Below the pieces are notes generated by a model, which worked only from the letters and a program-made list of their open reading frames with translations, did not search any database and was not told the origin of the DNA. This document shows, in pieces, positions 1,911-61,699 of a stretch of 64,000 nt of DNA (within the stretch, counting starts at the first letter, position 1; each line of letters starts with the position of its first letter). The translations under genes and the position numbers were made by a program. The stretch spans positions 6,459-70,458 of the forward strand of contig JAKMXF010000355.1 in NCBI GenBank assembly GCA_024704765.1, written 5' to 3'. This stretch comes from Oopsacas minuta (lineage: Eukaryota > Animalia > Porifera).

Positions 1911-2722
1911 GAGCCAAATAGTGAACTATTTGGGGAATTTATTGGACTCACGGAAAATTTAACTATTCTGTTTAAGCCATGTTAATTGATTTACAACCTG
2001 GATTATTCAAATTCATTCTCACTGGTCAATATCAATATCGCTCTAAAATCTACCTTCCTGATTATCGAGGTCGTTTATACATAGGTAAATAGGAACTTGA
2101 GCCAGGGGGGATGTTCGGATAATCGAAGATTCACCATATAGACAAAGTTCAAACGGAACCCCATCGCCGATAATCTTCTTCCTACCCTTCTGTTATGATT
2201 GTTTAGATATTGCAGATATTCGTCGGTGCGTTTCTCCTCTTAGCTAACCGATTGGACACCAAGAGCTAGCCACTATTTAATCCTAAAAGATTGGATTAAA
2301 GAACTAAATGAGGGATAATTCAATACGCTAATCCCGAATTTCATCTCTTGAATGCGTACGATTCAAATTTCCTCCAATATTCCTTCTATTAATAATTTAG
2401 TTAACTGATAATTACTGTAAACAAATTGAAATTTATATTGACTGGATGATCATATTAAATTGTAATAACATTGTTTTATGAATATTAGAGGGGAACATGA
2501 TAAAATATTTATTTACAACCTGAGCTGATATGTGTATATATATATATACAAATATTTGCTAGCTAATTCATTGTAGAAATATTTATCGCCTGAGGCTAGA
2601 TAAAAATCTCTCGAAACTTGATGCCTTTCCCATTTTTGCTAACCCAACTCTTTTAAAACAGGCTAAAGTTTGAAAGCCCCTTATGTAATGGTTTTTACCT
2701 AGCAAAGTAATTGATAATTGAT

Positions 2723-8362: not shown

Positions 8363-8469
8363 ATATATAGTATTAAAATGCAATTAATAAATATGCATAT
8401 TTTTGTATGTCCAGAATTGGTTGAAAAGACTTTCAGGTCTGAATTTTCAAAATTATTCCAATGCGCAAG

Positions 8470-37616: not shown

Positions 37617-38893
37617 CGAAATAGATTCAAAAATGTTGCTCTAACTCATTTAAGATTAAGGAAAAAAGAGAATAAAGCCTACATACATACATACATACAA
37701 TCGTTCTACACTCATGGGTATGACTACATGAAGTATACAGTGGCGGCGGAATCATTTCGAAGTAGGTATGAGCAATTCTCATTTAGGCCAAAATATTACT
37801 TTCAACTACAGTGTAATTTACATGATTTCTTGAACATACATAATTAACGGAAGGGAACAGTACTGTTCTGTAATTTGTTGATAGCTAAATTACGAAAGGA
37901 ACGGAACGATTGGTAGTTGAATTACACTCTAGGACCCTAGGGTCCTAGATATAATTTTCCTACATAGTATACCCCAAATCTAGGTTTAGTACTATTGTCC
38001 ACTTGGTAGAAAACAAGAGGAGTTCCAAAGAGACATCAAATGATTCGAATCAATTTAAAAGATTATAAATTAAGTCAATAACCTGAATTTACAGGTAGAA
38101 TCCAATGTTAATACAATATGAGGTCAAATAGTATAGCTGTAAAATTGATTAAACTAAAGCCAAAGGTGATCTTTGATTTGTGGCCAGTGGAGCGGAGCCT
38201 AATTTTTAAAGTGACCGTAGATTTAAAAGTTTGAGCACCCCTGTACTAAGACAACCAATTTAAAACGGAGCCACTATACTATAAAATTGGAGTAATCAGC
38301 ACAGTAAAACAATTATTAGACAGTCAGATAAGCGTTATACAGATTATATATAAATCTGCCACTCCACCAGAAGAGTTGTGCCTCAAAATGGGTAATCGGA
38401 CACTTCGTCTGCGGACATTTCGTCCACGGATATTTCGTATAGGACAATTCGTATAGCGACATTTCATATAATAGACATATCGTATAGTGGACAATTAGTC
38501 CAAATATTGTATATTACATGCTTACTAAAAAATTGGGTAAACGGACAATTCGTCGCATGGACAATTCGTCACTTTTATGACTTCGCTATTTAGTCTTTGT
38601 TTCATAAGAAGTGTTGATTGAGGTTGTGAGAAGTAAATTGTTTATATCCCACTCTTGAAGTTTGGAATTTGCAGCTGATTGGTATGTTGTCTATTGTAAC
38701 ATGATCAAAATAGTATAAAAATCAGTCAAAAATGGGGATTTAAAAAGTCTTAATACTACCAAGAAACTATGGCTACTTTCCTAACTTCTTCGTTTTCGAT
38801 TGAGAGGATTCCGAGTGAAAGAAATAAGGATAAACCAAGCATTCAAGGTTTTATTCATACTTTGAATAGAAAATCTCACGATAGCGAATACTG

Positions 38894-41867
38894 CACAGTG
38901 GGCTTTTTGCTGGAAATAGCATGAAATTTTTACCCCCTCAGAATTGTATTTCCTTATTATCATTGAATTCACAATCCTTTCAAACCTAGAAATTAGTAAT
39001 TTCATTCTGATTCAACAAGTAAATTGGTTGTTATGGTGATGAATATTTGCGGCTTCTTGTAATTGGAATTTCTGTGTGGTATATCAAAATCGATCAAGTT
39101 TCATAGTTATATTTTTAGCACTTGTAACTAAGAAGAAAGAATTCCTTTACAATAATGAAACATTTATATTTCAATTATCTAATTTACATCTTGAAATGTC
39201 GTTTGGTTTCTAACTTTCTATTCTAAAACTAGATAAAACGCGATGACTATTTAGGACATTTTTTTTCGGCGTCCACAGGATATTTTATGCTGAAACTTGT
39301 TGTGGCGTTTCGTTGCGTGAACTCTCACTGGTCTTAAAATGTAGGTTGTAATAATAAATTCAAAAAATATAATAGTTTAGACCCGCCGGAGGGCGCCCAA
39401 AGTATCAAGCATTCATTTGAATGGGTGTAACTTTAATGTAAAATTTCCCTATGAAATATTAGCATTATGAATAACAAGGAAGCTTTTGACTTTCTATCCT
39501 CACGTAAATCTGTCAGAGATGCAACAATCGTATTTATGGATAGTCAGCAACTTGATGATAAATATTATAGTTGTATCCGATACAAATTCGTTGAGTTGAA
39601 GGGTGATAGAGAGATATTTCGTAAAAGAAACGACCTAAATACATGGGATGATATGATATTCTTTGACAATTCAACATTGGCAGAGAAGAGGCGGTTATCG
39701 TCTGAAGGTGATATTTGTACTCCTAATCATGTTCATGCAAAGGCTATCAGGAAACCACTCCTAGAATTAACGATTAAAGGACAAAGGGTACGTCTGGAAC
39801 CTCTTTTAGCCCTGATTAAAAGCTTAGCAGCTAGTGAGAACGTGGATAGCAAAACGATGGCAGCCATGGCTCTGCAATTTGTCTCATCTTCTTCAGGAGA
39901 TTACTCCACCAGTTCCTTCTGTCTGGAAATAGTCAGCAAAGGCACATTTCAAGGCAATATAAAGACACACATCTCAATTGCTAAGTCTACGTTCCTCCTA
40001 GGGCAACTGGAAATAGGTAAGCAAAAGTACATTGAATTGAGGAGACTTTGTAAGTCAGACAATGTACTATTCCCTAAGTATGAGCTAATTTCCCAGTATC
40101 GAGCAGATATTACTCTGGAGAAGGAATTCATTTTTATCCGCAATGTGTCTGATGCGCCTATGGGAGTAGGGATATCTTACATCTCTATCATCAAACAGAC
40201 AATTTCCCGCCTACTCGAATCACTTCCCACAGATTCTGAATTTGAATTCCCGTTGACATTTTCTGCAACAGATGGCTTGGATGGATCTGGATCCCATCAA
40301 GTTTATAATCAGATTCAAGAGTCACCAGATATTGGTTCCAAAAATTTCATTCTCTTTGCTTTCAAACATCTCGCTATCCACGACAGCGCAAACAAACTTA
40401 TTTGGGAAAACGAAAGGCCCAACTCACAATTTCAGATTCGCCCAGTCACTTTACTAGCTGCCAAAGAAAATAGCGAAAATGTACGTCATCTAATGGATAC
40501 TTATATCAATCCTTACGTAGCAGACATGGAAGAAAATGGGATACCACTCTCGCAAGGACTTGTGAGGATAAAACTGCTCAGGACCATGTTCGATGGAAAA
40601 ATGGCAGGAATTCTATCTGGAGCCGGTGGTGCTCACTGCCAACTCTGTACTGCGACTTTCAAACAACTGCATGATGTCGAACTTATACGAGATGGTTTTC
40701 CTATTAATCGTTCAATAACATCGGCTAAAGAACTGTTTCAAAGCGTGAATGAAGTAGAATTTCTATCTCTAAGTTCCAATGACCGTCTTGGATTGACTCA
40801 CCAACCTATTTCCGACATCGATATAATTTGCTCTTCTCCATTACATTCATATTTGTGCATCTTCAGATGATTTATGACCCTCGTTTATCATCTGCAATCA
40901 GGTGCAAGGAAGTGGTCACCATCATCCTTAGGGATAAAAAACTTAATGAAGTTTGTTTCAGGCTTATTGATGGAAAAGACTGGTATGAAGATTGATCAAC
41001 CCAGCAGTGATGGTGGCACTACATCAACTGGCAATGTTGCTCGAAATTGTTTCTTGGACAAAAACCAATTTCTTTACTGGGTTTGTTCCTTGATACCAAC
41101 AGAATACCATGAAAATATAAAGGTCATCCACACTAACCTTTCAGTATGTTTGCGTATTTACAACAGCGACCGAGAGATAACACTGAAAGACTGGATATTC
41201 TTTGCAAGGACACATACGAATACATTGTAATCAGGTTCCCTTGGGCAAACATCAGTCCAACCTTGCATAAATTACTAGCCCATTCTTCAGAACTCATTAG
41301 AACTTGTAACAATAGCCATGGACTTAAAGTCTTCTCTGAAGAAGCAGTTGAAGTTTCAAACAAACTCGTCCGAAGGTATCGCGAACACCTTGCCAGAAAA
41401 ATGTCGTTTTCTCTGAATACTCGAGATATCTTTATACGACTGATGTGTAATAGTGATCCTGTCCTCAATATGTATAGAAAATTTACAAAAGCAAGCAAGA
41501 AAACCCACTCTTCTGAACCTCGAGACCAAGAAATTCTTTTCTCACAATTAACTTGCTAATAAATAATGATTGAAATAGATGGAAGCACAAGATACAATTT
41601 AAATGTGGGTATGTTAAATGTGTGTCTATGATCCAAAATAAGCTTTCTATCGCCTCTAGCAACTGAATTTTAAGCTCAAAAACTATAATTTATGATAATA
41701 TGAAAGGTGTCAATGACGTCATAACTTTTTAATGAGATGACCTAGATTTTTTTTATGCAGAAATCGTTTTCTCAGGGGTAATTTCCTATTGGCTAATAAT
41801 GCATTATATATCTCTATCTTGCATGGTTTTCCTATTTCCATTTCACCCCCCAAAAATGCCCACTGTG
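38894..41867 (+). mobile_element. RAG1-like/Transib transposon A, complete ends, 5-bp TSD
   Basis: CACAGTG at 38894-38900 and CACTGTG at 41861-41867; TSD TACTG at 38889-38893 and 41868-41872; removing the element restores the host MULE reading frame. Confidence 0.96.
39467..41559 (+). pseudogene. RAG1-like/Transib transposase A (~695 aa); one nonsense codon (40868-40870) and one frameshift (~41175)
   Basis: GLDGSG (catalytic D), MFDGK (second D), CQLC and HKLLAH (Zn ligands), SEEAVEVSNKLVRR (catalytic E), GNVAR, IFIRL...SDP; NBD-like segment at aa ~94-136. Confidence 0.93.
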
Positions 41868-44632
41868 TACTGGGTGTGTGAAAAGCGCGGAATCTGCAAG
41901 CGAGGCTACACACAAGTAATAATCAAGTAATCAAACCTACAGATCCTTCAATAATACCAAGTGAGCATTCGCATAGTTCTGATATAACTCGGGGTGAGAT
42001 GCTAAGAGGGCATACGAACCTCAAGGAATCGCTCGAAATTCTGGATCAAGTACCCGAAATCTCCTTGCAACTTCAGTAGAAGGAATGACAGCAGAATCCA
42101 TTAACAAATTACCAACGCTTGACTCTGTTAAGAGAAATATTAGGAAGTGTAAGAGAAGAGAAGAAGAATTTTATGGAAATCCAAGTTCTTGCGCTGAAAT
42201 AATAATTCCAGAAGATTTAAATTTACACTTAATGGTGAGAGCTTCCCATTATTTGATTCAGGAGAAGGTGATGATCACAGAATGATTCTCTTTGGAACTT
42301 CAAAGTTTTTATCTATACTTAAAGAAAGTACCAACTGGTACAGTGATGGCACATTTAAAGTTGTTCCAGAACATTTCTTCCAACTTTACACTATCCATGC
42401 ACAAAGAGATGGATATATATTCCCTTGCGTTTATGCTTTATTTCAGACTAACACTGAAGAGACCTATAAAAGAATGCTCTCTTAACTGCTCCAACTAGAG
42501 TCCGAATTAAATCCTACATCCATAATGGTGGATTTCGAAAAGGCCGCGATAAATGCATTGGAAAATACTTTCCTTGCATGTGTCTATGGATGTTTCTTCC
42601 ATTTAAAATACAGCATTTATCGGAGAATTCAAGCTAATGGATTAGCTACGTTGTATCAACAAGATAGGGATTTAGCTTTGGAGCTGATGATGTTGCCCTG
42701 CCTGGCTTTCGTGCATGAGATAGATGTTATAGATTGTTTTAACATCTTGATGCATGAATATCCTCAATCTGGGAAGACAGTTGCAAAATATTTTGAAGAC
42801 AACTATATTGGAAAACAGCTACCAAATTGTTCTCGTAGGAACCACCTTTTCCTATCAGAGTGTGGAACATGCATCAAAGAGTGATGGATCGAATCCCTCG
42901 AACAAATGATAGCGTTGAAGGTTGACATAATGCTTTTAGTCATGGTATTGGTCATCCACACCCAGATTTCGTAAAACTCTTAAGATTTTGCAAAAAGAGC
43001 AATCACTTCAAGAGGCAATTTATGCAAAGTGGGAAGGACGAAATCTGAAGCAGCGGTCAAAATCGAATATGGAACGTGAAGAAAGGATATATACCATAGT
43101 TATCAAATATGATAATCGCGAAATCATCGAATATCTTCAAGGGATAGCATATAATTTTGAATTTAGTTATTTAAATCAAATACTAAGTATCATTTCCATT
43201 TATTGCTTACTATCTTAATTTCTTTCCTTTTCCACGCGACGAGTCCACGAGACGAGTTGTCCGCGACGAATTATCCGTCGACGAATTGTCCATGCAACGA
43301 ATTGTCCGCAATTCAAAAAATTGATGTATTATCGTAGTTTAATAATTGAAAGTAGGATAATAGAATATGTAATTTAGAATGAATACAATGGAATAGTTTA
43401 GAAGTTAAAATTATATGCGATCCCTTTTAGGAAGGTTTTTGGTTCTCCATTTCCAAAATCTGAAACGATTGTTATGAGACGCTTAGCATAATGGATTTCT
43501 ATTTGGTCTTAGTTGTGCACATCCCAGTTTCACAAAATTAATTCGTCATTTACAGGTGGAACAATCTCTACAAGAAGCGGTGGTAACGAAATGGGAATCT
43601 GTGGAGGCTATCATTTAATCTAAACAAAGTATTTCCAGAAACGCATCAATAAGTCAAAATAACGAATAACTTGGGATTCGGGAATAAAGACCAAGATCGG
43701 TAACATTTTCATATGGAGAGAAAAATCAGCGTTTTCAATGTACAGACTTGCAAAGCCTGCTGACTGTATCTTCCGATAGATGTTTTGCGACAAGTGAAAA
43801 ACATCCTATTAAACACTTAAGAATTTTGATTCTAATGCATTGATAGCCGTTCTCAAAATCAGCCATGACAAAGAATGGATTCAACTCAGGACGTTATCAA
43901 GAAACTGAGTGAAAAGTGTCGTATATATTGACTCACTCTTGTTAGTCAACAGTGCGTAGACATATGGAATTATCATACCGCCCTTCTGCGCGTGAATTGT
44001 GTACAGTTGAATAATTGTTCTGGGACAACTTTGAAAGTACCGTCCACATACCAACTCTGAGATTCTCACAGTAATGATAACATTTTGGGAGCACAAAATA
44101 TAAGAATTCAATTCGAATCTTCGATCCCAGAGTCATGTATTAGAAACCTTTCTACCATTAATTAAAATCTGTATCTCTCAGGTATTCGTAATTCAATGGC
44201 AGAATCATGGTTGATGACATTCTCTTCTACTAAACTCTTATGGCGGCGTACTGTACGTTTTACTGAACTTAGAGTAGTCAATGCAACTATACTTGACTCG
44301 TTTAATCCAACAAGGCCTTGTGTCAAAATAGTATTAGTTTTCTCCCCAGCTAAAGCACGGTCTTTCATCAATTGATAACCCCGTAACATTTCAGAGCGAG
44401 CTGGATTAGGTCCATGGGTGTGACTACTGAATATTTCAGTAAATAACGTAGGTATTGATATTGCTCCATCTGGAGATGTAGGCAATCAAGCCTTACAATT
44501 CCACGCTGCTCGCACAGTCAATATTGATTACCTGCTAAACTTACACCATTGAGAATATACAAAAATCCTTTTATATGAGCTTTATTTCTTTCTTTGGTTG
44601 ACTTGATAAGTTCAATAGTAAGTGTAGTTGTC

Positions 44633-46006
44633 CCGGGTGATTCAAAAAAAATGTAACCCAAAAGTAAATGCTTGCAGTGAAGACAATTCTTAATCAAACT
44701 CAATCAAACTCAGGACATACGTAGAATATCTATATTTATAGTACATATTAAAAATTCAGCGTACTACAGTCAATATTATATGAATTAGAGCAAATGTTCC
44801 AAATGACCTCCTTTGAGTTCTGTACATTTCTTGAGTCGTACCACCAAGTTGTTCATGACATTTTTGCATACAGTGGTCGGAATCTTTCTAATTTCTTTGA
44901 TGTTTTCCTTCAACTCGCTGATGGTTCTAGGCTTAGTAGAATAAACTCGGTCTTTAAGATAGCCCCACAAGTAGAAGTCAGGAGGGTTTAAGTCGGGGCT
45001 ATAGGGGGCACACTCAAAATTCGTCTTGAGACTGATGACTCTTGCTCCAAAGTGTTCTTTGAGCCAGTCCCTGGAGAAATTTGAGGTGTGCGAGCTCGCT
45101 CCATCTTGTTGGAACCAAAAGTGATTCAGAAGTGATGGGTAGAGGACTCTGAGCTGCTCCCAGAAGAGCTCAAGGACCTGGATATAACCTTCTTTCGTAA
45201 CTGTAACAGCCCTGTCATTTTCTTCAAAAAAGAATGGTCCTATGGTCCCTTTCGCCGAAATGGCTGCCCATACTGTGCATTTTTCTGAGTGTAGTGGTTT
45301 CATTGCAACTTCCATTGGTCTCTGGATTCCCCAGAACACGTTTGTCTTGGAGTTGATTTTTCCATTTAGATGTAAGTGAGCTTCATCGGACATCCAAAGT
45401 AGTGAAAGAAATCGACCCTGACATTCAATTTTTTCCACCAAATTCTTGGACATTTTAAGCCTTTTGGACTTATCACCAGCTGTTAACATCTGTTTTGTTT
45501 GTATACGATATGGAAACCTCTTAGGATCATCAATTAGGATCCTCCTGATAGTGCTTGCAGATATTTTTCTATCCAATGACAATGATTGACTCCTCCGCCT
45601 GATTGACGTTTTGGACTGAATTCAACAGAATTTCGGACCATCTCAATAACTTTTGCTGTTTGTTTCTTTCTCCGACCAGAATGCGTTAGTCTGTCATCAC
45701 ACTTACTATTGAGCTTTAGAACTGTCCCATACTTCCTAAACTTCTCCACCCAACGATAGATCATCGATTTATCGGGAGCAACTTGGGTCTGGAATGATGT
45801 ACAAATTGCGTCTTTACAGTCTCGTATGAGGAGGTATTAAAATAATGTTCCACGGAGAAAATTCGGTGCTGCAGTATCCAATTTGGCATTTTCTGATCGT
45901 TTAGACTCAAACTAATTATAATCAAAAAGAATAAATAGGATTAGTTAAGAAATAAAGATAGGGTACCCGTAAAACATTTTGAGTTGCATTTTTTTGAATC
46001 ACCCTG
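44633..46006 (-). mobile_element. DD41D (rosa/Visitor-type) Tc1/mariner element, copy 1
   Basis: WMSDEAH; QQDGASSH...SPDLNPPD with 41-residue spacing; TIRs CAGGGTGATTCAAAAAA / CCGGGTGATTCAAAAAA. Confidence 0.93.
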
Positions 46007-46405
46007 TAATTCCACTATCAATTGAAGGTTGCCATTTGAAAATTTGATTATTCCCTTCCCAAGAGAAAATATATAGTTAATTCACTTTACAAGTAGTAAT
46101 CACAAGTGTCAAATAACATTAAGAATCAAGAATGGAATTATAGTCGTCAACCCAAACAAATGTATGCGCTATAATTATAACGTAGACGTGTTTATGCTCA
46201 GTACACAAGTGTTAGTGGATAGCAGGTATTATACAAGATTTAAACCAATTGTCCACTATACGATATGTCCATTATATGAGATGTCCATTATACGAAAGCT
46301 CCGTAGACGAAGTACACGTAGACGAAAAGTCCCTACACGAAATGCCTGCCAATCCTCAAAATGATCTAGAACAATATCTATAGGAACTACGAATTCAGGC
46401 TATAT

Positions 46406-47280
46406 CAGGGATGCCAACCTCTTAAACCCAAAAATTGGGAAATCTATGCCATATTGGCGGGAATTCGATCAAAAAATCAGGAAGTCAATATTAAAAAGCG
46501 GGAGTCTCAAAAAATATGCAAATATATTCATTTATCCTTGAATAGAACTATAAAATACAATTATTTATTGTGTTTGGATATCAACGATTATGAACTCCTA
46601 TTTATGTTATTTTACCTTCAATATTTCATCCTCATATCCTCATATGGTCACAACTAGATTAATAATTAGTTAATTTTCCATACTAACGTATTACAAGGAA
46701 TGATTTTCCGTGGATAGATGTTGCTGACTTGGAAATCTTCAAAAATTCACAACTTGGTTCATAATCAAAGCATGGCTCAATAATTATCACGTAACCTTAC
46801 CTGGAGTAAAATTTTCATCATATTTTAGCTTGTCCCTTTTAGGTGTCGTGTTTTGCTTGACAGAGCTAGAAATCCTTAATTTTAGTCTAAAATCTGAATC
46901 TTTACATGAATGCCATAAAATCTATATGTTGAAATTTTTTAACCAAGTAAAGAACTTTTGAAGATTTCCAAGTCAGCGACATCTATTTACAACAAAATCA
47001 CTCCTTGAAAAGCCTTAGTATAGAAAACTAATTAATTTTCATCCAGCTATTTACTTTTTGTTGTATTGTGACTCTATGGGAGTATGCTGGGAAATTTTAT
47101 ATGTAAAAGCAATACAATTAGGAGTATCATTATCGTACATATCAAAGATAATAATTAATTATTTTTTATCGTTCTATTCAAGGATAAATGAATAAAATAG
47201 TACATATTTTGAGACTCCCGATTTTCTCCAGCTTGTTTTTATTGATTTCCGTTATTTGGTTTGAGAGGTTGGCATCCCTG
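46406..47280. mobile_element. Non-autonomous derivative of the 31542 hAT family
   Basis: Ends CAGGGATGCCAACCTCT / GAGAGGTTGGCATCCCTG; interior 46700-46860 matches the transposase 3' end at 31985-32150. No TSD match. Confidence 0.8.
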
Positions 47281-49959
47281 CTAGAACACATCTAAGCAAT
47301 ATTTTTAGTACGGTCAAATTTCAAATAATATATATTCCACACTCCACAGTTGAATAATATACATATTCGACAATAGATCCACGGTTTTGAATATTTGCTA
47401 GTTCAGTTCTGTAATTATGCTATCAATTGTTTTGTTGTTTGGTTCCGCAATTTAAAGGGAAAAATGGAATTATTTATCGAAACAACAAGCCTCTTGCATT
47501 TACAGATTTTTTCGTCTAGATATTGTAATTGAGTGCCTTAAGTCTAGGTTTGTACATCTATGTCATGAGCTACATCAAAGGAAACTTGAGGTTTGAGGAG
47601 AGTCTTTCAATTTGAAGAGCAGTGCCTATTTCGGTGCAGGTAAGTAGCCAGGATTTTCACCAAGGGGAGGGCAAATAGATTTCTGGGGGGCAGGAAGAGA
47701 GGCAAGTTGTTGTCACGGGTTACCAGGTGGCATGCCCAGTGACTGATCTATCAATTTCTATTTGTGTATAACCATCCAGCTAGTTAGTGGCGTAATGTGG
47801 CTTAGAAATCTGAGGAGATCACACATTCTATCTGGTTGGCAACAGGTTCTAGATGAGGGTCTATGGGCTGTGTAAACGATCAGCATGGTCCTAGACAATA
47901 AGCTATGATTGCTACCACATTAATTTTCTTTATACTGTCACATAGGTTTGAATCTTAAAAAGTTACCTTCTTCATATAAGGCATTACTACTATTCAAAAC
48001 CATGGAATACTTGAAGTCCATTAAATTTGATAGAAAAGTATATTATTCATAATAATGCAAAATTGGTGCATTTTGACCGGAATAAACGTATTACTGTTAG
48101 TTAATACTTAACACAAGCTCTGTCATCCTACGAGTCTCAGGTCGAAATGACATAATCTTATTGGCAAAACAGGAACATGTGTGTGAAATATTAACTAACA
48201 ATATAATACATTCATTCAGGACAAAATGTACTAATTTTGTATTATAGTGATTTATATTTTTATTTATCAAATAAAAAGGAATTGAAATCCATAGTCCATT
48301 AAAATTAGGTTCAGTGGTATGGCCATATATGTAGAATGTCACAATATGATGGATATATTTGATCAGGGAAATAGTAAAAAATAATACTTAGGTCCGTTGA
48401 TAAATACCTACAATTCCTATCCCTGTGTTATGTGATCCAAAGATCACATATCACAGTGGCTTTAACTTAGGATTTAGAGCGAATTTTTCATCATCCCATA
48501 AGCTTTCGAAAATGTTACCATTAAATTCAGCATAGACTGAAACCTGGGAAACATAATTCTCTGAGAAAAATCCTAGTAATTTGTAATCAAATATCATGCT
48601 TAGTGGATGGCATAACTGAATCATTATCACCTCTATTTTATAATTATACATAGGCATACAATTCTCGCTATCTAAAAATACTCATCAGAATGACAGCACA
48701 AAGTTTTAACTTATTATTAGCTCAGAATATAGTCTTCTCAACTATAATAAGAGCTAAGCATTTCACTTTGATCATTTTCTCCATGGTTCAATTAATTTTG
48801 AAGTCATATAATGTGTCGGGACACATTATACCTTGATATAATTACATCTCAAACTAACTGTGGCTAGTCGTGGCAAGGTAATATCAAGTTTGAGGGTGAT
48901 TCGCCATAATAATACCTATAATATATAACCAAATCCAGCCCCCCCCAAATGAACACTAAGCATTTTTAATAGAGCGAGCCAAAAAATTTAAGAATTTCAG
49001 AATTTAAGCAATTCATACTATACTACTGTATTTACTAAATATCTAGCAACTATTTCGAATTTTAAATGAATAACCAGGAAGCACTAGATTTCGGTACAAT
49101 TGCAGAATCTTACACCTCCCAACTTTTTTAATGTGGTCAAAAATCCCTATATGCACCGTTCAAGAACTCGTTAAGAGAAGTTGATAGAGCTAAAGAACTC
49201 CAAAATCGGATTAAAATTGACAAAGTTATGAAAATTTACTCCCTAAGCTAAATCCTATGGGGAAAATTGTATTACTCACTATAATAAAATTATATTGATT
49301 TATACATTACAATTACCATAGGAATGCTCATACTGTTGATATTGCGGTTATACTCGCTTGTTACTCTACTCTTTCATGTTCATTTGTTTGCTATTCAGTG
49401 TATTTACTGCAGGTAATTCTTGTTACTTTAAAGGAAAGCTGGTTATCACATAATTCTGTCTACAACACTAAATATACAATGCAACATTTCATTTAATATT
49501 TTTATACTGTGGCACCTCGATAATTCGATCTACTTAATGGAATTCACGATATAGCGCATATATTTGCATATATACTGTTTCCCAAAATGGTAGTTTAATT
49601 TGTATTACTCCGGCCAAGGCAAACCAATTTTGATCGTTCGTTTGTGTTCGTATCAATGTTAGAAACAATTCATGTACTATTTAATCGCATAGTTATTAAT
49701 CCAGCTTCTCTCCAGGTACGTTAGTAATGTTGGAGCAAAGTTTTCATGGATTTCTACTTATGATAGTGGACAGAATATTATATATATGACACCCCAAGGC
49801 TGGATATACTACTATGGGTAGTAGTTATATTTGGAATAACTAATTAGTATTATTAGGCTCTCTATCTACTACTTTAACTACAAATCTACAATATAACAAG
49901 TACTGCTACAAAAGAATCACCAAAGCAGAAATATTACAATTTGACAACTGGATATTGTT

Positions 49960-50950
49960 TCCTTATTTCCATGATAAGGTTGGAGAAACTAGCTTCTCCA
50001 TATTTTTTCTTTCAACAAACTTCAGATAAGTGAGTATCTAAAAGTTTGGGGTTAGTAGTCATGCAATTCCTCACCCGTTTCTTCGCACCACCCCATGTAT
50101 TCTCAACTGTTTGCGTATGTACACCTGTAGTAGGGTCAACAAAATTGAGGCTATGGTTGACGGTGAGATGCTGAAAACTTGCAGCGGGGATAGAATTATA
50201 CGAAGCCCATTCGTCAGAAAGTATGGTAGTGCCCGGGAAAATATATCTCTGGATGAGAGGGACTAATGTTTCAGCCGACCTGTCTTAAACAGGTATCATA
50301 AAGATATCTTTTGTCTCTCTATCTATTCCTCCAAATACCCATTGACGTGATAGCATACGACCTCTTGAATACCTTCGATGTCCAAACTTTGATTCATCTA
50401 TTTCTACAATATGCCCAGGCCCTCCAGTTTGTTGAGGAATGACTAAAAATTCCTCAACACAGGTCTCTTTGGAAGTTCTTCCAGTCTGTTATAGTATGTT
50501 CTCCCCACCCCAGATTCTTGTGTAAAAAGGCAGTAGTTTGCAGATTATTGGCCCCGAAATAGAGAAATTCTACCAACTCAGTTAACGGTATATGAGCACT
50601 TTCAAAGAATGAGCCAATCCTCATGGAAGTGAATTTTTTGCATGACTTTTCCAGGCACCTCCACCCCTTCCCATCTGCAATACCTGAAAACGTTCCGGAT
50701 CGCATAATTCTACCGCATTTGCACATCATCCCGGTAGCTAAAAGTCCGTTACTTTTGAGCCATGCTATACAAGTATCTTCATCAATAGTGATTTTACGAA
50801 AAAGTTGTTTTAAGGTAATTTCTTCAATAACTGGAAATTTTGTAGGAACCAGCAGAGGTTGAAACGATGGAGCAACTGTAATTAAGGATTCTATTATAGA
50901 AATATCACAACTCGAATATTTAGAATTTGTTACTTATATTTCCCTGATAT
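49960..50950 (-). pseudogene. Merlin/ISXO2-like transposase, decayed
   Basis: CKCG...DGKGWRC..KSC...SMRIGSFFE zinc-ribbon region; VEIDESKFG, WVFGGIDRET, TILSDEWASY, VNHSLNFVDP, HTQTVENTW. Confidence 0.9.
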
Positions 50951-51444
50951 TCCTTTTATACTTGACTTAAGATTAATCGAAATGCATTGTATGAACGTTT
51001 GGAATGTATTCTTTAAAATAGGTAATAATTACATGTGGCTTGCATGCCACTTTCCTAAACCATTTGTTGTTCAAATCAGTAACCAGACAAACGGCATTCC
51101 AATTATACTAAATTTTGTATGTAATAGATACTGGTATAACTATGAACACATCAAAAATCTATACAATAGAAATTAAATCTGAAACCACATATTTTACCAC
51201 ACTTCTCATGTCTAATCTCAAGCATATATACCATATTTTAGGTGATTGTTGCTTGTGAAGAAATTTATGTACATAATCCCATAATCAAATAAATTTCTCA
51301 TTTGGATCAGTATATTGTCTTACAATAACAATATCTATTAAATAGAATTTGATTTGGTCATATTAATCGCAAATTAGGCGATGTACTTAGTACATAGCTT
51401 ATTACAATTTCCTAAATCAAGAGAAAATCGTCTTGAGTGAGTTA

Positions 51445-52815
51445 CAGGGTGATTCAAAAAAATACAACCCAAAATGTTTACGGGTACCCTATCTTTATTT
51501 TTTAACTAATCCTATTTATTCTTTTTGATTATAATTAGTTTGAGTCTAAACGATCAGAAAATGCCAAATTGGATACTGCAGCACCGAATTTTCTCCGTGG
51601 AACATTATTTTAATACCTCCTCATACGAGACTGTAAAGACGCAATTTGTACATCATTCCAGACCCAAGTTGCTCCCGATAAATCGATGATCTATCGTTGG
51701 GTGGAGAAGTTTAGGAAGTATGGGACAGTTCTAAAGCTCAATAGTAAGTGTGATGACAGACTAACGCATTCTGGTCGGAGAAAGAAACAAACAGCAAAAG
51801 TTATTGAGATGGTCCGAAATTCTGTTGAATTCAGTCCAAAACGTCAATCAGGCGGAGGAGTCAATCATTGTCATTGGATAGAAAAATATCTGCAAGCACT
51901 ATCAGGAGGATCCTAATTGATGATCCTAAGAGGTTTCCATATCGTATACAAACAAAACAGATGTTAACAGCTGGTGATAAGTCCAAAAGGCTTAAAATGT
52001 CCAAGAATTTGGTGGAAAAAATTGAATGTCAGGGTCGATTTCTTTCACTACTTTGGATGTCCGATGAAGCTCACTTACATCTAAATGGAAAAATCAACTC
52101 CAAGACAAACGTGTTCTGGGGAATCCAGAGACCAATGGAAGTTGCAATGAAACCACTACACTCAGAAAAATGCACAGTATGGGCAGCCATTTCGGCGAAA
52201 GGGACCATAGGACCATTCTTTTTTGAAGAAAATGACAGGGCTGTTACAGTTACGAAAGAAGGTTATATCCAGGTCCTTGAGCTCTTCTGGGAGCAGCTCA
52301 GAGTCCTCTACCCATCACTTCTGAATCACTTTTGGTTCCAACAAGATGGAGCGAGCTCGCACACCTCAAATTTCTCCAGGGACTGGCTCAAAGAACACTT
52401 TGGAGCAAGAGTCATCAGTCTCAAGACGAATTTTGAGTGTGCCCCCTATAGCCCCGACTTAAACCCTCCTGACTTCTACTTGTGGGGCTATCTTAAAGAC
52501 CGAGTTTATTCTACTAAGCCTAGAACCATCAGCGAGTTGAAGGAAAACATCAAAGAAATTAGAAAGATTCCGACCACTGTATGCAAAAATGTCATGAACA
52601 ACTTGGTGGTACGACTCAAGAAATGTACAGAACTCAAAGGAGGTCATTTGGAACATTTGCTCTAATTCATATAATATTGACTGTAGTACGCTGAATTTTT
52701 AATATGTACTATAAATATAGATATTCTACGTATGTCCTGAGTTTGATTGAGTTTGATTAAGAATTGTCTTCACTGCAAGCATTTACTTTTGGGTTACATT
52801 TTTTGAATCACCCGG
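51445..52815 (+). mobile_element. DD41D element, copy 2 (near-identical to copy 1, same frameshift)
   Basis: Translated ORFs identical to copy 1 in the ORF track; a few substitutions in the TIRs/5' UTR. Confidence 0.93.
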
Positions 52816-53011
52816 AACTAACTTTCACTCGATTATCTGAATTTGTCCTAATTAAGCGGAGTTGACTGTCTAATAACACTGGCATTATCGAGAAGCAGGA
52901 ATCACAAACTTACTGTTGCGGCATTCATCACATCTCGGCATTAATATAAATTGCTAATTATTGGTTCGGAGCGACCGCCAAACCTGTTACACCACCTCAT
53001 AGGGCCCTGTA

Positions 53012-56000
53012 CATAGTGGCACACCCCCTGGGAATTGGTCAAAATTTCAATCCGATATTTAGTTACCATTTAAAGTTCATTGGAAAGAGAAATATCCAAT
53101 TACTTGAAATATCTAAATTTGTTATGATCCATCATTTAGTTTAGCAACAACTGGAATGTATATAAGCATTACAATTTCTTGCTCAGAAATTATTCTTGTA
53201 AACCACAGATATTCATCTATATCAATGAACTTAAACTCCAGTATCTAAGCAACTAATACATTCCAAAGACTTCATTCCATTGCATTTTCGACTACTCCCT
53301 TATTATAGTGATTATATAAGCGGAGTTCAAATAATGAATCCTTAAAATAGCTCAAATATTTTGAGAAATTTTTCTGTTAGATATTTCTGTCGTCACTCAA
53401 CTTCGAAGTCTCATAACTTCATCTGTCGCGTTCTGTCAAGTTGTGTCATGAGTTTTATAAGACAGCATTTTTAATTCTTTATAAAATACAACAATTTCCA
53501 GGTTCCCTAAAATTCGCGCAAATATAGTTTCAATCACATTAACTTTTGAATTTATCTAATATTTTTAAAAATTATCTTTTCAAAATTTATATAAATATTA
53601 TGGTTGCTTAGCGATATAATCAAAACGTGAAGTTATTTACATTTTTATGCTTGTGTTTACAAAATTCAGCTTGTAATTAATATAAATAAATGTTCTCATC
53701 ACGTATTTTTACAAAGATTCCATTAAAAATCAACAGTCTTCTACTGTGAGAAAAAGTTTCGTCAAAAGTTCCTTAATTCTTAGATTTCAGAATGTATTTT
53801 ATAAGCTCATAAAACAAACATGCATATATAATTATAATCTTACTTTTTGCCCTGTATTTACAATATTGTTAATAAATAATATATTAATTATCTAGAAAAT
53901 GAACAACCTTCAAGCTTTTCAGTTTTATTGTGAGCATAAATTACTTAGCACCCGTTCAATCGCAGACCAATTTATTTCAACTCATGGTTTTGATCGAGAT
54001 CAGCAAAATTTCTTTAGTCTGAAGTTCAATGATATTCAAAAAGAGAGAGCCTCTTTTCATAAATATTCGGGCCTTGATACTTGGAATTCCATGTGCTTCT
54101 GTCCTCTGCCAAAGAAGCCTAGGTTAAGTGCCTCTTCTTCATTAACCATTAACTTTGAAGAGACTTTAATCTTTCAAAAAGATATCGCTCGCTGACTTAA
54201 CCACCAAAGGTTTGAGAAATCGGCTCTCTTCTCTTAAGTCTCACCTCGAATCAGTCGCTGAAAACGAGCATGTATCTCCAAAGACTCTTGCAACTTATCT
54301 CTTACTACTTTGTTGCAATGAGGAGCAGGACATGAATAGTGCCAATATTTGTAAAGAGATACTCGAGAAGGGAAACTCATCTTCTATCTATCCACAATTA
54401 TCACTTGATAAATCTGCCTTTCTTTTCGATTCGCTTGAGATCGGTAAAACAAAGTATTTAGAACTTCGGTGTACGTTACTATCTGAAGATCTCAAGTTAC
54501 CAGGCTACAATAGTCTAGCTAGACATCGGGCTCAAATTAATTTGCTGGATGAGGTGCGTATAATTCATAGAGAATTTCCATGTGGAGTAGGTATTTCTTA
54601 CACCAGACTACTCACCCATACAGTTGAACGAATTGTATCTAACTTAAGTCCTGATAACCTTGTCTATCCGCTGAAAGTTCGAGTATCCGATGGCTTAGAT
54701 GGCTCTGGGCGTCATCGAGTTTACCAGCAAGCTATATCTAACCCTGACCTCTCGACTAAAACCTTCATTTTATTTGGTTTCAAGGTTAATGCAATCATAA
54801 ATGCAAATGATCATATCCTATGGAAACCTCATCATCCAGATTCGCCATTTTGCACTCGACCAGTTGCCCTCTTAGCCCTTCCAGAAAATGAAGAGAGTGT
54901 CAAGTTTTTGATGGACTCATTAATAAATAACGAAACTTCAACTATTGAAGAGAGTGGTTTGTGTTTACACATGGAAATACAGAGGTCAAGATCATATGAT
55001 CTCATTTCGATACAAAGATGGCAAAAATGTTAAGCGGTGCTGGTGGTGCTAATTGTCAAATGTGTACTGCTACGTTCCAACAGATACACGATATTAGCAT
55101 AGTTCAAAATGGCTTTCCCATAAATAGAACTATCCGTGATGCACGTGATGTATTTGATGAGGTTGATGAAGAAGAATTTTTGTCTTTGCCAACAAATCAA
55201 AGGTTCAATTTAACACACAAACCGATCTCAGAAAAAGATATCATATCAGCTTCTCCTCTACATGCATATTTGAGAACATTTAGTTGGTTCCTATTATTGA
55301 TTTGCCATTTACAGTGTGGTGCTATTCAAAAATGGTCACCAACTTCGCCAATAATTCTTGGGGCCAAGAAATTTATTACTAGCCTTATTGAAGAAAAACT
55401 TAATATATCAATTGACACACCATCAGTCCAAGGAGGAACCACCACAACCGGAAATGTTGTTCGGAGATGCTTCACACGTAGCGATGATACTGTGCAAGAT
55501 TTTCTCTATTGGGTATTGACGGTTGTTCCTCAAGAGACACATCAAGTTGCCACTACAATCTTTATTAATTGAGTGCTATACTGAGATTGTATAATAGCAA
55601 CAGGAAAGTGGATACTGAAGGCCTTGATAATGTATGCCGAGAGACTTACGAATCTATTTTAACCAATTTTTCATGGGCACATGTAACCCCTACTTTACAT
55701 AAACTTCTAGCCCATGCACCACAAATAATTGCAGATCATAACGATGGGTTTGGCTTAGAAGATTTGTCTGAGGAAGGCCTTGAATCTTGTAATAAATTGG
55801 TCAGGCGATACCCTGAGAGACTCTCAAGAAAATTTAGCTTTGAGGACAACGTTAAAGATGTGTTCGTCAGGCTTATCTCTCAAAGTGATCCAATATTAGC
55901 ATCATTTCGTAATATTACCAAAAACGATTCGGAGCCAGATCTATCTGAGTTAAAGAGCTGTCAAGATATTTTGGTGAATTCTCTAATTATAAATACGTTA

Positions 56001-56288
56001 TAGTTTGTAGTTCAATGTACATTAAATAGTGTTAATAATATCAAAACATAAAACATTCAATTTCTGAACCTATAGCTCACAAATTGGCTTAATTAAAATC
56101 GATAAAAATATCAAAATATTTTTGAATGTGACAATGACATCATTACTTTCACGCCCAAAGACTTAGAAAAATCTAGTTACGTCAATCGATTCCTTGGGTA
56201 CGATTCCCCATATGTCAATAATATAGTTTAATACTTTATCTAGTACCCTAATACCTACTTCCAGGTTTTAGCCATTTCGTGCCACTGT
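53012..56288 (+). mobile_element. RAG1-like/Transib transposon B
   Basis: Ends CATAGTGGCAC / ACAGTGGCAC (terminal base of right heptamer apparently lost); direct repeat CTGTA at 53007-53011 and 56289-56293. Confidence 0.85.
53899..56003 (+). pseudogene. RAG1-like/Transib transposase B (about three frameshifts and one stop)
   Basis: GLDGSG, HFDTK, CQMC, SPLHAY, GNVVRR, HKLLAH, SEEGLESCNKLVRR, DVFVRLISQSDP. Confidence 0.92.
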
Positions 56289-56293
56289 CTGTA

Positions 56294-57636
56294 CAGGGTG
56301 TAACATAATTGATGACTTCCAGAAAAAATATACATAAATTAACGTTCGATGAATTCACTGTCCAATCTATTTTCCTATATATCCGCCTTTATATTTGAGA
56401 CATGTTTTAATCCTTTTGGGCATACCGCTCACCAGATTGTCGAGAATCTCAGGGGAAATCTGAGACCATGCCAGTTTCAGCTGTTTTTCAAGCATATTTA
56501 GATTGGTTGCTACTTCCATTTCATTAACTTTGCTTTGGATGATGGCCCATAAATTCTCTATTGGGTTTAAGTCTGGCGAGTTGCCTGGCCAAATATCTTT
56601 CTCCCAAAGGAATTCAAATTGTCTTTACACCAATCTTGAGTCTTTATGGCATTATGAGCTGGTGCCCCGTCCTGCTGAAAGATGTACCTGGACATGTTTG
56701 GGAGTAATCTTCTGACTAGAATAGATCCCAGTGTTCCTTTTCCTCCTTAGTGCGATCTTCAGAGACTTCTTCAGTATTTCTTCGATATAATATTTTGCAG
56801 TAACTGTACAGGACTTAGGTATAATATGCAGTTCTGATATCGCATTGTATAACATCATTCCCCAAACATGTATCTTAGAAGGAAATTTAATTTTCCCATG
56901 AGGGGCCACTGATTCTTTCTCCCTTGCCCATGCACGATCATTTTGTCTATTAGATGTGTGGAATAATTCATAGGGGATTCATCAGACAATAACACCATAC
57001 GCCAATCTTGAACAGTCCAATTAACTCTCTGTTTACAGAAAGAAATCCGATCTTTAATCTGTTTTTCGGATAATCTTGGCTGAAGCGGTCTTTTATAACT
57101 AGTTGCTCCAATAGAATTCTTGAGATACCTTTGGACAGTCATATGTGATGCTATAATACCCTTAGACTTAGGTTCTCTCGACAATTTTCTTGTAGATTGG
57201 TGTTTCTTTGTTAGTGACTTAGAAATAATGATTTTCCAATTTTGATAAGGAAACCTTCCGTCCTCTACCACGTTTATTTTCCAATGAGATTCCCTTCTGG
57301 TATTGAGTCCACCATAGTCCGACAGTACGCCAGGATGCTCCAAGTAAATTGCAAGCACGTCTTTGCGTCATCCCACCTAATAACATCCCTACAGCCTGGT
57401 TTCTAATATTGATCTTGTGTTCTTTGACCATGATTTTGCTAAGATATTAGGGAGCATAAACTATTAAATATTTTTGGACATAGACATGAACATTAGTATG
57501 AAAATGCATAAATAATGGTACCAGAGGATTGATATAATCGGATAATGGCAAAACTTTTACTATAGTTAAATAAATATGAGTGCGGTTGTATAGTATATAG
57601 GTACAGTGAAGTAGTCATCAATTGTGTTGCACCCTG
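56294..57636 (-). mobile_element. Tc1-like DD37E element, full length, decayed
   Basis: TIRs CAGGGTGTAACATAATTGATGACT / CAGGGTGCAACACAATTGATGACT with TA flanks; QQDGAPAH...SPDLNPIE has 37-residue spacing after restoring one frameshift. Confidence 0.92.
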
Positions 57637-59379
57637 TACTCTAAACTTCCGTTATAAGATAACATTAATTATATGGCTAAACTCACGCTATAACAAACTG
57701 ATTCACAAACCCCCTCCTGCTTGAAAGTATTGATATTCTCCGCATATATCCTAATGCTGCAGATCACGAAGTGTAACCGGGTTCCGTACCGGTCCAGAAC
57801 ATTTCGTTATAATGAGAGTTTGTTGCAGTACAAACTGATTACACTTGCTCAAGTTTATCTATAATAGACATTTAACCCCACACATTTGGTTCAGGCAAGA
57901 AATACCACCCGTAATATATTCGGTATCCAAACTTGATATTTTTGCTCTGCACTGGCTGAACATTATCGGGGTATTACAACGCAAGTGTCAACCCCATACT
58001 TACCAATATGAGTGAAGATAAAAAGCGGGACATCGTCGGATGCAGCATATTTGCATTAGACTGGACTACAAAATAGAGGGGCAATTAAGGGTTTTGTCAA
58101 GTTTTGGCTGGACATTTGCCTCATTGGCAGTCAACACATATTCGGGGCGAGAAACCGTGGTGTCTCGCCAACCAACGGAACAGTTGGCAAGTATGGTGCG
58201 CTTGAACAACTTCACACACAGGATGCAATTTAGTTGAAAGCATAATATTAAATGAAATGTTGCATTATATATTTAGTGTTGTAGACAGAATTATGTAATA
58301 ACCAGCTTTCCTTTAAAGTAACAAGAATTACCTGCAGTGAAATACACTGAATAGCAAACAAATGATCATGAAAGAGTAGGGTAACAAGCGTGTTTAACCG
58401 CAATATCAACAGTATGAGCATTCCTATGGTAATTGTAATGTATAAATCAATACAATTTGATTATAATGAGTAATACAATTTTCCCCATAGGATTTGGCTT
58501 AGGGAGTAAAATTTTCGTAACTTTGTCAAATTTAATCCGATTTTGGAGTTCTTTGCTCTATCAACTTCTCTTAACGAGTTCTTGAACGGTGCATATAGGG
58601 ATTTTTGACCACATTAAAAAAGTTCGGGGTGTAAGATTCTGCAATTGTACCTAGATTTCTCTCTCAACTATAAATTCCCAACGGCCGTCGATTCTTTCAT
58701 CCAGATATTTTGATCTTCGGATGGCGAATTCTCCTCAATTCCGAGAAGGTTTAGCAAATTGAAGTCTGAATGTAATGCTTTCAGTAAGCATAATTATCTA
58801 TCTACATATGGTAATTACTCCTGTTTTATTCTACTCAACCCCCCAGTCCAACAAAGAAATGTATTATTGGAGAAGAGCGCTACCTTCGAAAGATCATTGT
58901 GGTTTAACACACGAACCCATATCTGAGATTGACATACTACCTGCATCTCCACTACATACCTACATTTGTGTCTTTTGTTGGTTCATGCTTCTTATTTACC
59001 ACATGCGTTCAGGTACTTTTAAATAGTTGCCAACCTCTAGAGTGATAAAGGATTCAATGACATTTACCCGGGTGTTCTTATGCAAGAAAAGAGGGCTGAG
59101 AATCGATCAACAATCCAGTGATGGAGGAACAACTTCTACTGGAAATATGGCAAAACAGTGTTTCCTCAATAATAATAACTTTATTTATTGGGTGGCCACT
59201 TTGATCTCAGAAGATATTAGAGAGCCAATTAGTATTTTGCATAAGAACACAGGCCTACACTTTTTAGTTGTATTGATTTTGTCAACTGATATATACTAAT
59301 TCTGGGTTGCTGATTCCGATTATTTAGTCAGTTTCTCCCTATTACGTCAAGTTATCTCACAATCTTATTACTACATTTA

Positions 59380-60763
59380 CAGTCTGTCAACTTGAAATTG
59401 GGAAGATCTTTGTTTTTCTCTAGCTACAAGTACATTTAGTGTATTTTTATTCTAAAAGTGTTATTAGAATCCTTATACAATCAATAATATAGTAGGCCTA
59501 ATATTTTATCTTATTTCCGGTACTTTTCGTAATAATTTGACTCTTTTTGGCATCGATGACCAAAATGGACGTAAAAATTCATGTTCTAAAGAATTCCATA
59601 CTTCATTTAGCTCCCTTTCCAGCTCATTTAAATTTCGTGGTGACTTCAAATCGATTTCTCTCTTGATCCACGACCAGAGGTTCTCGATCGGATTCAAATC
59701 CGGACTACAAGCAGGCCAATCCATCCTATGTATCCCTTTCTCCTCCATGTATCCTTTAGCAAGCTTGCACGTGTGTTTGGGATCGTTGTCTTCCTGGAAA
59801 ACCCATCCATCAGGGTACAAGACACTTGCTTGTTCTACTAAACATTCGTGCAGAATGTCGCAGTAAAGTCGCTCGGTTAGATTTTCTCTGAAAACCTTGA
59901 TAAGAAACGTTCCACGTGCTGAAACGCTCCCCAAACATGCAATTTAGGAGAGTGTTTCGTACTGGGTTTTACTGGTTTCGAATCACCTTTACACCAGACA
60001 CATATATACTCTGCCACCAGCTAGCGAAATAGACATCTCATCGCTAAATATCACTTTCTCCCAATCTCTACATCTGTTAGACTTAGCCCAATCGACACGA
60101 TAAGCCTTATAGGTTTGTGTAAGCATCGGAATCTTTCTAGCAACCTTGCGGGTGAAGCCATGCCGCTTCATCTCAATCCTTACAGCCTCATGTGAGAACG
60201 ATAGACCCCACCCTTTGTTAAATTTGCAAGTCAACTTCCTCAGATAACCTAGGATTGTTGATTGCCAAACTAACAAGTGATCTAGCGTTATTTGCTTTGA
60301 TCTGACGCTGTTTCCCGGAACCAATCTTTCTATCAACGGATTCAGCATTCCTCAATTTGTAAACAGTGCGATAAACTGTACTTTTTGGAACTCCAGTTCT
60401 TCGAGATAATTCCATACAATTCGTGATTCCTGTGTCGAAAAGTATCTTGATATTGTTACGCTGTTCTTGCTCGTTCATTTTAAGGTTTTGAATTGATGAA
60501 AGTAAAGAATTATTAGCGAAGAAATAGAAGTGTCGCGAGAAATTCAAGTGATAAATATTTATATAGAATATTTGATTAGTAACTAAGTATAAATTGAAAT
60601 ATTTTGTAACCGCAGTCAGCTAGAGAAGTTCAGTTGGTTAAGAAATGACTAGAAATAGTTGAAAAACACAAATTATCAATATTATTACGATAACCAATTT
60701 GAAAATGCAATTAGGAACATTCTAAATCGAAAAAGATGTTCCCAATTTCAAGTTGACAGATTG
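59380..60763 (-). mobile_element. Tc1 (DD34E) element, full length, frameshifted
   Basis: TIRs CAGTCTGTCAACTTGAAATTGGGAA / CAATCTGTCAACTTGAAATTGGGAA with TA flanks; IFSDEM, EDNDPKH, SPDLNPIEN. Confidence 0.93.
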
Positions 60764-61699
60764 TATTTATCCGTTTGTTGAGCCAAAGCGATCCAGTTCT
60801 GATAGGTTTTCGCAATGTTCTTAAGTGTAAGGAATGTGGATGAATCGGACACGCCTGCAGGCTGAAATGTACAAATTTGCTTCACCAGACGATCAAGACA
60901 TATTATTTAAATGGTAAATATTTGAGCAGCGTCGTGCCATCATTCTTCAACTTCCATACAAATAGTTTTCGGCAGCGCTCAAAGGCAAGAAATATCTAAC
61001 CTTGTGGGGACCTCTGTTCAAGGCTAATCAGGCAACGCAATCCCAATTATGGCGAGCCCAGATAATGGAAACGGACCCGCACGGCATATCCCAAGTGGCG
61101 AAAAAATTAAGTTACACTGATCCATCTGAAGTGTATTGCAGAAAAAGCGAAGCAACTGAGGATTTCATGCCAGAACGAAACATTTGTATCACAATAAGGC
61201 TACAATAGTTAAATTTCATTTAACGGATAATTAACCGTAAGTTATTTAGAACACGTAAAACGACCAAGTTACCCGACAAATCTTCAATATTTCAATTATT
61301 CGTTTCTTAGATAAAATTGCTATTGCCGTAATAACGCAGCGTAAGGAATGTCAAATTGATAATCCAAACACTTTATCCATTGGTACATAATTTTAATGTG
61401 AACAGTTTATCTAAGTAACTCAAATAACACAAATATTTCCCGAATTCAACTTTTGTAATTTGCTTACGTCATCATAACAAGAAAAATAGAAGCCATATCA
61501 AAAATATTTTGGTGTCAATCAACTGGTTATATGCAATAACCCATAGATACGTAATACATTCTATGCACTTTAAATGTACCCAAGATCCTGAAGCCTACAA
61601 GATTGTCATTTATGCCTCTGTGATAATATTGAGGGTAAGATGCGAGCTAACTTGGCCAAAATCTTACAACTTGGAATTTGAGCCAACGGGACATGCCCC

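Follow-up and report, generated by a model that had tools for sequence, protein, structure and literature searches.

In the glass sponge Oopsacas minuta, RAG2-less Transib transposons have asymmetric ends with spacers of 10 and 19-20 nt

It is debated whether the 12/23 asymmetry of the signals for antigen-receptor recombination is older than RAG2. Published surveys have described Transib transposons of insects, ctenophores and the bacterial type whose ends are asymmetric, and argued that the asymmetry is ancestral. In the insect families Transib5 (D. melanogaster), Transib2_AG and TransibN1-3_AG (A. gambiae), the 5′ ends resemble RSS12 and the 3′ ends RSS23 of the recombination signal sequences (RSS), and it was stated that "even the 12/23 rule can be derived" from Transib (Kapitonov & Jurka 2005, PMC1131882, Fig. 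4C); a later hypothesis was built on these 12/23-like ends (Yakovenko 2021). Subgroup I Transibs are all asymmetric, while Subgroup II holds both kinds, and the asymmetry was attributed to inheritance from a bacterial ancestor (Tao 2022, PMC9435367). The first RAGL transposon has also been modelled, citing Transib, with asymmetric ends, a CCGHC tail and a nonamer-binding domain (NBD) (Martin 2023, PMC10629977). We analysed 64,000 nt of Oopsacas minuta DNA (the window), which is AT-rich eukaryotic DNA of about 35% GC, and confirmed that three elements in it, A, B and C, represent three families of RAG2-less Transib DNA transposons. All three window copies are dead. Their positions are listed below, each end being given as heptamer, spacer length and 9-mer.

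38894..41867, plus strand: element A, a complete but dead Transib copy of 2974 bp, defined by its boundaries, its duplication and a second copy
38889-38893 and 41868-41872: perfect 5-bp duplication of A, TACTG
38894..38919, plus strand: short end of A, CACAGTG + 10 nt + TGGAAATAG
41832..41867, minus strand: long end of A, CACAGTG + 20 nt + TGGAAATAG, in inverted orientation
39467..41556, plus strand: transposase pseudogene of A, with the contexts of the catalytic D, D and E present
39734..39946, plus strand: NBD-like segment of A, the equivalent of the RAG1 NBD, residues ~90-160, from profile and structural alignment
53012..56288, plus strand: element B, a dead Transib copy of 3277 bp nested within another transposon
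53007-53011 and 56289-56293: perfect duplication of B, CTGTA
53012..53037, plus strand: short end of B, CATAGTG + 10 nt + TGGGAATTG
56255..56288, minus strand: long end of B, ACAGTG (terminal heptamer base lost) + 19 nt + TGGAAGTAG
54188..56000, plus strand: transposase pseudogene of B, spread over three frames by two or more frameshifts
48452..61622, plus strand: element C, a single old copy in pieces (48452-49091, 58662-59243 and 60764-61622), defined by blastn collinearity with locus L004, 2733-6343
48452..48477, plus strand: short end of C, CACAGTG + 10 nt + AGGATTTAG
61588..61622, minus strand: long end of C, CACAGAG + 19 nt + AGGCTTCAG
58844..59248, plus strand: transposase remnant of C, middle of the core (tblastn; 83% identity to O. 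minuta P0065)
60826..60870, plus strand: remnant of the C-terminal CX2CX3GHX5C zinc-knuckle tail of C, interrupted by a stop

The six ends had been proposed in an earlier note on this DNA, and all of them were located, with patterns far above expectation. The heptamer, 10-nt spacer and 9-mer occurred together three times in the window against 0.01 expected, and the long pattern twice (41832-41867 and 61588-61622) against 0.04 expected. Chance resemblance in AT-rich DNA would be in keeping with the frequency of bare CACAGTG, which was found five times in the window and is no commoner than in shuffled sequence. However, the combined patterns exceed expectation 75- to 300-fold and recur with perfect duplications at other loci, in five assemblies; these counts, together with the spacer scan described below, refute this explanation, to which we assign next to no probability. 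The remaining CACAGTG sites, at 3657 and 31192, were not accompanied by a 9-mer, and the window held no solo ends, miniature derivatives or further ends of the A, B or C type.

We then compared the window elements with 12 related loci (L001-L012), picked as relatives of the window transposases, from O. minuta and the assemblies ERZ25072730, ERZ25071281, ERZ20067936 and ERZ25069837 of the European Nucleotide Archive (ENA). The elements of the ENA assemblies likely come from related sponges; a TRAF gene flanking one of these loci has its best named relative in O. minuta, at no more than 40-57% identity. The transposases fall into seven lineages (A-G), which span the clade tree and share roughly 40-55% protein identity. 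Lineage A includes a second O. minuta copy of element A (L001 2426-5395; 98% identity, 10/20, TGGAAATAG, duplication CCCTG) and an element of 66% protein identity from ERZ25072730 (L002; 10/20, TGGAAATAG, duplication CAGAC). A second O. minuta copy of B (L003 1926-5203; 97% identity, 10/19, duplication GGGCC) has CACAGTG at both ends, followed by the 9-mers TGGAAATTG (5′) and TGGAAGTAG (3′), and window B therefore carries point damage. An intact O. minuta copy of family C (L004 2733-6343; 3611 bp) is flanked by the perfect duplication CATGA and ends in CACAGTG + 10 + AGGCTTTAG and CACAGTG + 19 + AGGCTTTAG. A relative of B in ERZ25072730 (L005) retains the 3′ end, with a 19-nt spacer and a truncated heptamer, and has lost its 5′ end within a long terminal repeat (LTR) retrotransposon; it was counted for the long end only. 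The other four lineages are represented as follows.

L007 and L008 (O. minuta): lineage D, 10/19, TGGAAATAG; duplication CTATC/CTATT (4/5) at L008, none at L007
L009 (O. minuta, decayed): lineage D, 10/18, TGGAAATAG, no duplication
L010 (ERZ25071281): lineage E, 10/19, AGGGAGTTG / AGGGAGTAG, duplication GTCAG
L011 (ERZ20067936): lineage F, 10/19, AAAGAATAG, duplication TAAAG
L012 (ERZ25069837): lineage G, 10/19, GGGTAATAG / AGGTAATAG, duplication GGTAT

In 13 elements, spacer lengths of 5-29 were searched for the sequence closest to the 5′ 9-mer of the same element, and the best 3′ spacer was 19 or 20 nt, and once 18. The short end lay upstream of the transposase gene in 13/13 elements, as the earlier note had claimed for the window, and the 11 clean elements, covering all seven lineages, had 10 nt upstream and 19 nt downstream (20 in lineage A). 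Every complete element has one short and one long end together, and every intact copy has CACAGTG at both ends.

Terminal alignments of eight lineage representatives showed how these ends are built. Position 8, after CACAGTG, is always G, and the next 4-5 bases are common to both ends of an element and differ between lineages, so that the terminal inverted repeat (TIR) is 12-13 bp long, not 7. The 9-mer has the consensus NGGNAATAG followed by G. As had been proposed, it co-varies within the family, with 78-100% identity within an element versus 66-70% between lineages, and it is altered at both ends together in lineages C (AGGCTTTAG) and F (AAAGAATAG). The 5′ spacers share 26% identity between lineages at positions 13-17, spacer sequence in general is 26-36% identical beyond the first five bases, and the 3′ spacer has a weakly conserved central AAA.GGC. 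The earlier statement that spacer lengths are kept while spacer sequences are unrelated thus held for the lengths; the sequences are not wholly unrelated, as the first 5-6 nt belong to the inverted repeat and AAA.GGC recurs in the 3′ spacer.

No gap is needed to align the terminal ~80 bp of different lineages, whereas the stretch between the left end and the ATG ranges freely from 573 to 1075 bp and that between the stop and the right end from 220 to 548 bp. Since the ends remain gapless while the untranslated lengths shift by hundreds of bp, the comparison supports a constraint on spacer length specifically at the ends, in line with the selection on spacing that had been suggested. An alternative is that a single insertion of 9-10 bp in an ancestral 3′ end was simply inherited, and that the transposase pairs any two ends. 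Indeed, all sampled lineages belong to one clade and are not independent origins, and RAG1 without RAG2 loses its preference for asymmetric substrates (Carmona 2016, PMC4840297). However, unconstrained spacers would have gathered indels, whereas here the length stayed within one base as the spacer sequence turned over, and was kept at ~40% protein identity beside untranslated regions that moved by hundreds of bp. We therefore regard such a frozen accident as distinctly improbable.

Further conserved blocks were found internal to the 9-mers. At the 3′ end, the block AAATGTATTAT lies ~61-72 nt from the terminus, in ungapped register in 8/8 representatives, and its conservation between lineages exceeds that of the 9-mer. 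Its sense-strand sequence is ATAATACATTT, so that the block may act as a signal of the polyadenylation type or as an additional site for the transposase. At the 5′ end, most lineages conserve an A/T run, AAAATTT, at positions 30-36, and most also have the palindrome TGAATTCA ~70 nt from the terminus (window 38964-38971; L001, L002, L004, L008 and L010). Both may serve as a promoter or an accessory binding site. The 3′ block is located as follows.

41796..41807, minus strand: AAATGTATTAT block of A
56218-56229: AAATGTATTAT block of B
61551-61562: AAATGTATTAT block of C
3′ ends of L001-L012: AAATGTATTAT block

These end-specific blocks, held in fixed register past the 9-mer, would favour the view that the spacing is selected for a reason other than pairing, each end being a separate fixed nucleoprotein platform with its own tasks, such as ordered cleavage or expression. 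The 5′ end would then overlap a promoter, and the 3′ end a polyadenylation region or extra sites for the transposase or host factors. On the other hand, the same inverted 9-mer stands at both ends and changes in concert, which points to one reader, and the difference of about one helical turn is that of all other asymmetric pairs of the RAG family (12/23, 9/20, 10/19 and 6/17). We consider separate platforms unlikely, although they carry more weight with us than a frozen accident.

The class assignment rests on several features. The elements encode a transposase with a RAG1 core, have CAC heptamer ends and are flanked by 5-bp duplications, and therefore show the features of the Transib superfamily, the placement of the sponge transposases in it being based on PDB profile scores. 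Perfect 5-bp duplications were found in nine elements (A, B, L001, L002, L003, L004, L010, L011 and L012); the nine duplicated sequences have 53% GC versus ~35% in the genome, a small sample (n=9) for judging the preference of Transib for GC-rich targets. An asymmetric TIR pair, as in Subgroup I, was found in all clean elements (10/19-20). In comparison with the V(D)J RSS, the heptamer CACAGTG matches exactly, and in place of the A-rich nonamer ACAAAAACC at 12/23 the sponge ends have NGGNAATAG at 10 and 19-20. The elements are 2.9-3.6 kb long, and a single open reading frame (ORF) of ~700 aa fills about 2.1 kb, which leaves no room for a RAG2-like partner. Indeed, no RAG2-like gene was present in the elements, and no ORF of at least 120 aa lies inside A or B beyond the transposase, except for antisense overlap; the proposal that this is a RAG2-less lineage was thus borne out.

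The right end of C, which had been thought the least secure, proved to be genuine. The window copy aligns with the intact L004 element in the following segments.

L004 element positions 1-654: window 48452-49091
L004 element positions 662-876: window 58662-58879
L004 element positions 1929-2292: window 58880-59243
L004 element positions 2590-3611: window 60764-61622

Since both halves of C are collinear with this one intact copy, and the long end is homologous base by base to that of L004, the right end is secure, and an origin of the two ends from different elements was ruled out.

We next consider the transposase itself. The pseudogene of A retains the catalytic contexts DGLDGSG, MFDGK and SEEAVE and is interrupted by an in-frame stop at 40868-40870 and a frameshift near 41190-41230. 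Its 467-aa ORF (P0001) is 99% identical to a hypothetical O. minuta protein, and the ORF matches HzTransib (PDB 6pqn) with E=1.4e-9, the match to RAG1 being weaker; the last coding pieces of A and of B match Pfam RAG1. In C, gene fragments survive at 58844-59248 and 60715-60870. Several families retain intact transposases of 700-725 aa, among them those of P0013 and P0029 (712 aa) and of P0068 (724 aa). With the family profile, HzTransib was the best solved relative (E=1.8e-47). An AlphaFold model of an intact relative, P0006, built from a 26-sequence alignment, had a mean predicted local distance difference test (pLDDT) score of 85.7, and its residues 163-670 superposed on RAG1 459-1004 and on HzTransib with Z 32, and on BbRAG1L with Z 28. 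Against RAG1 chains that include the NBD, the structural alignment reached back to model residues 86-106 (RAG1 389-413), and family profile positions ~85-140 aligned to the RAG1 NBD within a significant alignment. The sponge proteins thus have a three-helix segment equivalent to the NBD, and it is this segment that likely reads the 9-mer. An additional N-terminal helical domain (P0006 residues 1-62; window 39467-39650) was confidently predicted before the NBD-like segment; the core chains solved for HzTransib and RAG1 contain nothing equivalent. A C-terminal CX2CX3GHX4-5C knuckle (the CCGHC tail described for RAG1L, CTT1-type in Subgroup I Transibs) is present in P0009, P0010, P0012-15, P0047, P0050, P0060 and P0068, whereas lineages A, B, D and G lack it; the 10/19 geometry is identical with or without it. 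Subgroup I Transibs also retain the α11-α12 region of the zinc-binding domain (Tao 2022), to which ~35 residues behind the zinc-site CxxC of the sponge proteins may correspond; these residues align with BbRAG1L, and HzTransib does not have them.

Compared with the described systems, the sponge elements resemble the insect 12/23 Transibs in having a single RAG1-core gene, a 5-bp duplication, a CAC heptamer, a short 5′ and a long 3′ end, and spacers kept in length and not in sequence. They differ in their 10/19-20 spacing, with a difference of 9-10 in place of 11, and in having NGGNAATAG in place of an A-rich nonamer. AanRAGL from the pelagophyte Aureococcus anophagefferens (PMC9435367) has the same geometry when counted from the heptamer: in the published description, a terminal element of 13 bp is separated by 4 or 13 bp from an element of 10 bp, which corresponds to heptamer +10 / +19 (supplement). 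It shares the short end at the 5′ side and the 5-bp duplications, whereas it has a RAG2-like gene beside RAG1L and unrelated motifs (CACACCC... and CCTCAAYAYG). MleTransib_2823 from Mnemiopsis leidyi (Tao 2022 supplement) is likewise RAG2-less and from a non-bilaterian, its ends start with CACAGTGG, and a shared subterminal motif lies at 20 and 9; unlike in the sponge elements, the long end precedes the gene, and the two distances differ by 11 bp. HzTransib from Helicoverpa zea (PDB 6pqn, 6pqx and others) is closest by sequence and fold and is active in cut-and-paste transposition without RAG2. Its solved chains begin at sponge residue ~163 and thus do not cover the NBD-like segment and the N-terminal domain, and it lacks the ~35 post-CxxC residues that the sponge proteins share with BbRAG1L, as well as the Cys/His tail. 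Amphioxus ProtoRAG / BbRAGL (PDB 6b40) has a RAG1-like core (Z 28), asymmetric ends and the CCGHC knuckle, which several sponge lineages share and of which C keeps a remnant; it differs in the presence of RAG2L, in its 27/31 spacers and in its reliance on the TR2 region beside the heptamer.

The architecture is therefore already catalogued in kind (10/19 in AanRAGL, 20/9 in MleTransib_2823), though not for these sponge families, and the 10/19 ends are not a new principle. We found no paper on sponge Transibs: they go unmentioned in the O. minuta genome paper, and no sponge is named in the Tao 2022 supplement. New here are the host group, the 9-mer itself and a natural series of this depth; the evolutionary inference is already published. 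Accordingly, the suggestion in the earlier note that the pattern bears on whether end asymmetry predates the RAG1-RAG2 pair was overstated, that point having been made before (Kapitonov & Jurka 2005; Tao 2022; Martin 2023).

Taken together, we consider it probable that these sponge Transib families have bipartite ends whose 10 / 19-20 geometry is kept by selection across the entire clade, a short end presumably being synapsed with a long one. Each end consists of a terminal block, CACAGTG-G and 4-5 family-specific bases, followed by the subterminal 9-mer NGGNAATAG-G. By analogy with the solved RAG and HzTransib complexes, a transposase dimer would bring a short end together with a long one, its core would cleave at the heptamers through nicks and hairpins, as HzTransib and RAG do, and its dimeric NBD-like domain would bind both 9-mers. 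A difference of 9-10 bp, about one helical turn, would let the two 9-mers face the same side of the DNA and make the ends non-equivalent, like the 12/23 RSS pair.

Several observations weigh against this interpretation. The decayed L009 element has an 18-nt long spacer, and L006, which is related to C and lies on a contig of 7 kb with 3x coverage, has a short end of 10, an apparent 14-nt long spacer, counted from the nearest CAC heptamer downstream, and no duplication. In L006 the terminal 12-mer does not form an inverted repeat, and a flank of 9 bp recurs; as a counter-example it was set aside as damaged or misassembled, given the missing duplication, the 3x contig and the non-inverted 12-mer. 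Clean duplications are also missing from L007, L009 and window C (CATAT vs ATAAT). The extra blocks (AAATGTATTAT, AAAATTT and TGAATTCA) make the ends more complex than a two-part signal, and the upstream long end of the Mnemiopsis element means that the polarity is not universal in Transib. Furthermore, the sponge 9-mer is a different sequence from the A-rich RSS nonamer, and R/K-rich residues stand in the sponge proteins where the RAG1 NBD has its GRPR motif, because of which the mode of 9-mer reading may differ from that of the RAG1 NBD. Finally, obligatory pairing of a short with a long end would be a functional property, which sequence conservation can at best make plausible.

The window copy of C carries three lesions: an internal deletion of ~1 kb, a Tc1/mariner insertion and a 9.56-kb insertion. 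The last (49093-58652) is flanked by the 8-bp target duplication TAGATTTC and bounded by inverted ends of 408 bp that share 95.9% identity (49093-49500 vs 58244-58651), and its cargo comprises a Tc1-like copy, Transib B and an ORF with a Tc3-type helix-turn-helix (HTH; 56855-57358, minus strand). The Tc1/mariner remnant (59244-60763, minus strand) stands in place of ~300 bp of Transib C and contains HTH_Tnp_Tc3_2 (59989-60348) and DDE_3 (59506-59934) domains. Two copies of a 1.39-kb Tc1/mariner-like element with a 265-aa ORF and a weak DDE_3 match lie in opposite orientation at 44626-46012 and 51439-52823, and their 99.4% identity points to very recent activity. Elsewhere, a tandem array of ~46-bp period occupies about 1.9 kb (13900-15774; 92-96% between offsets), with an inverted partial copy at the window start (1-259), and a 1.1-kb inverted pair, 7267-8366 vs 62828-63922, 88% identical and 55 kb apart, probably represents two copies of another repeat family.

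The sponge elements add to the published surveys at least seven RAG2-less lineages of a non-bilaterian group that hold the 10/19 geometry while the spacer sequence drifts. With intact transposases, an NBD-like domain, and a tail that is present or absent across lineages, they are good material for a biochemical test of a RAG2-independent pairing rule. As a tentative extension, which we hold with less than even confidence, a transposase without RAG2 might strictly need 10+19 ends, its NBD-like domain reading both, and the 10/19 geometry shared with AanRAGL might be ancestral to the superfamily, with 12/23 a later stretch. If such strict pairing without RAG2 is true, the pairing rule would be older than the capture of RAG2, and the idea that RAG2 created it would be weakened.

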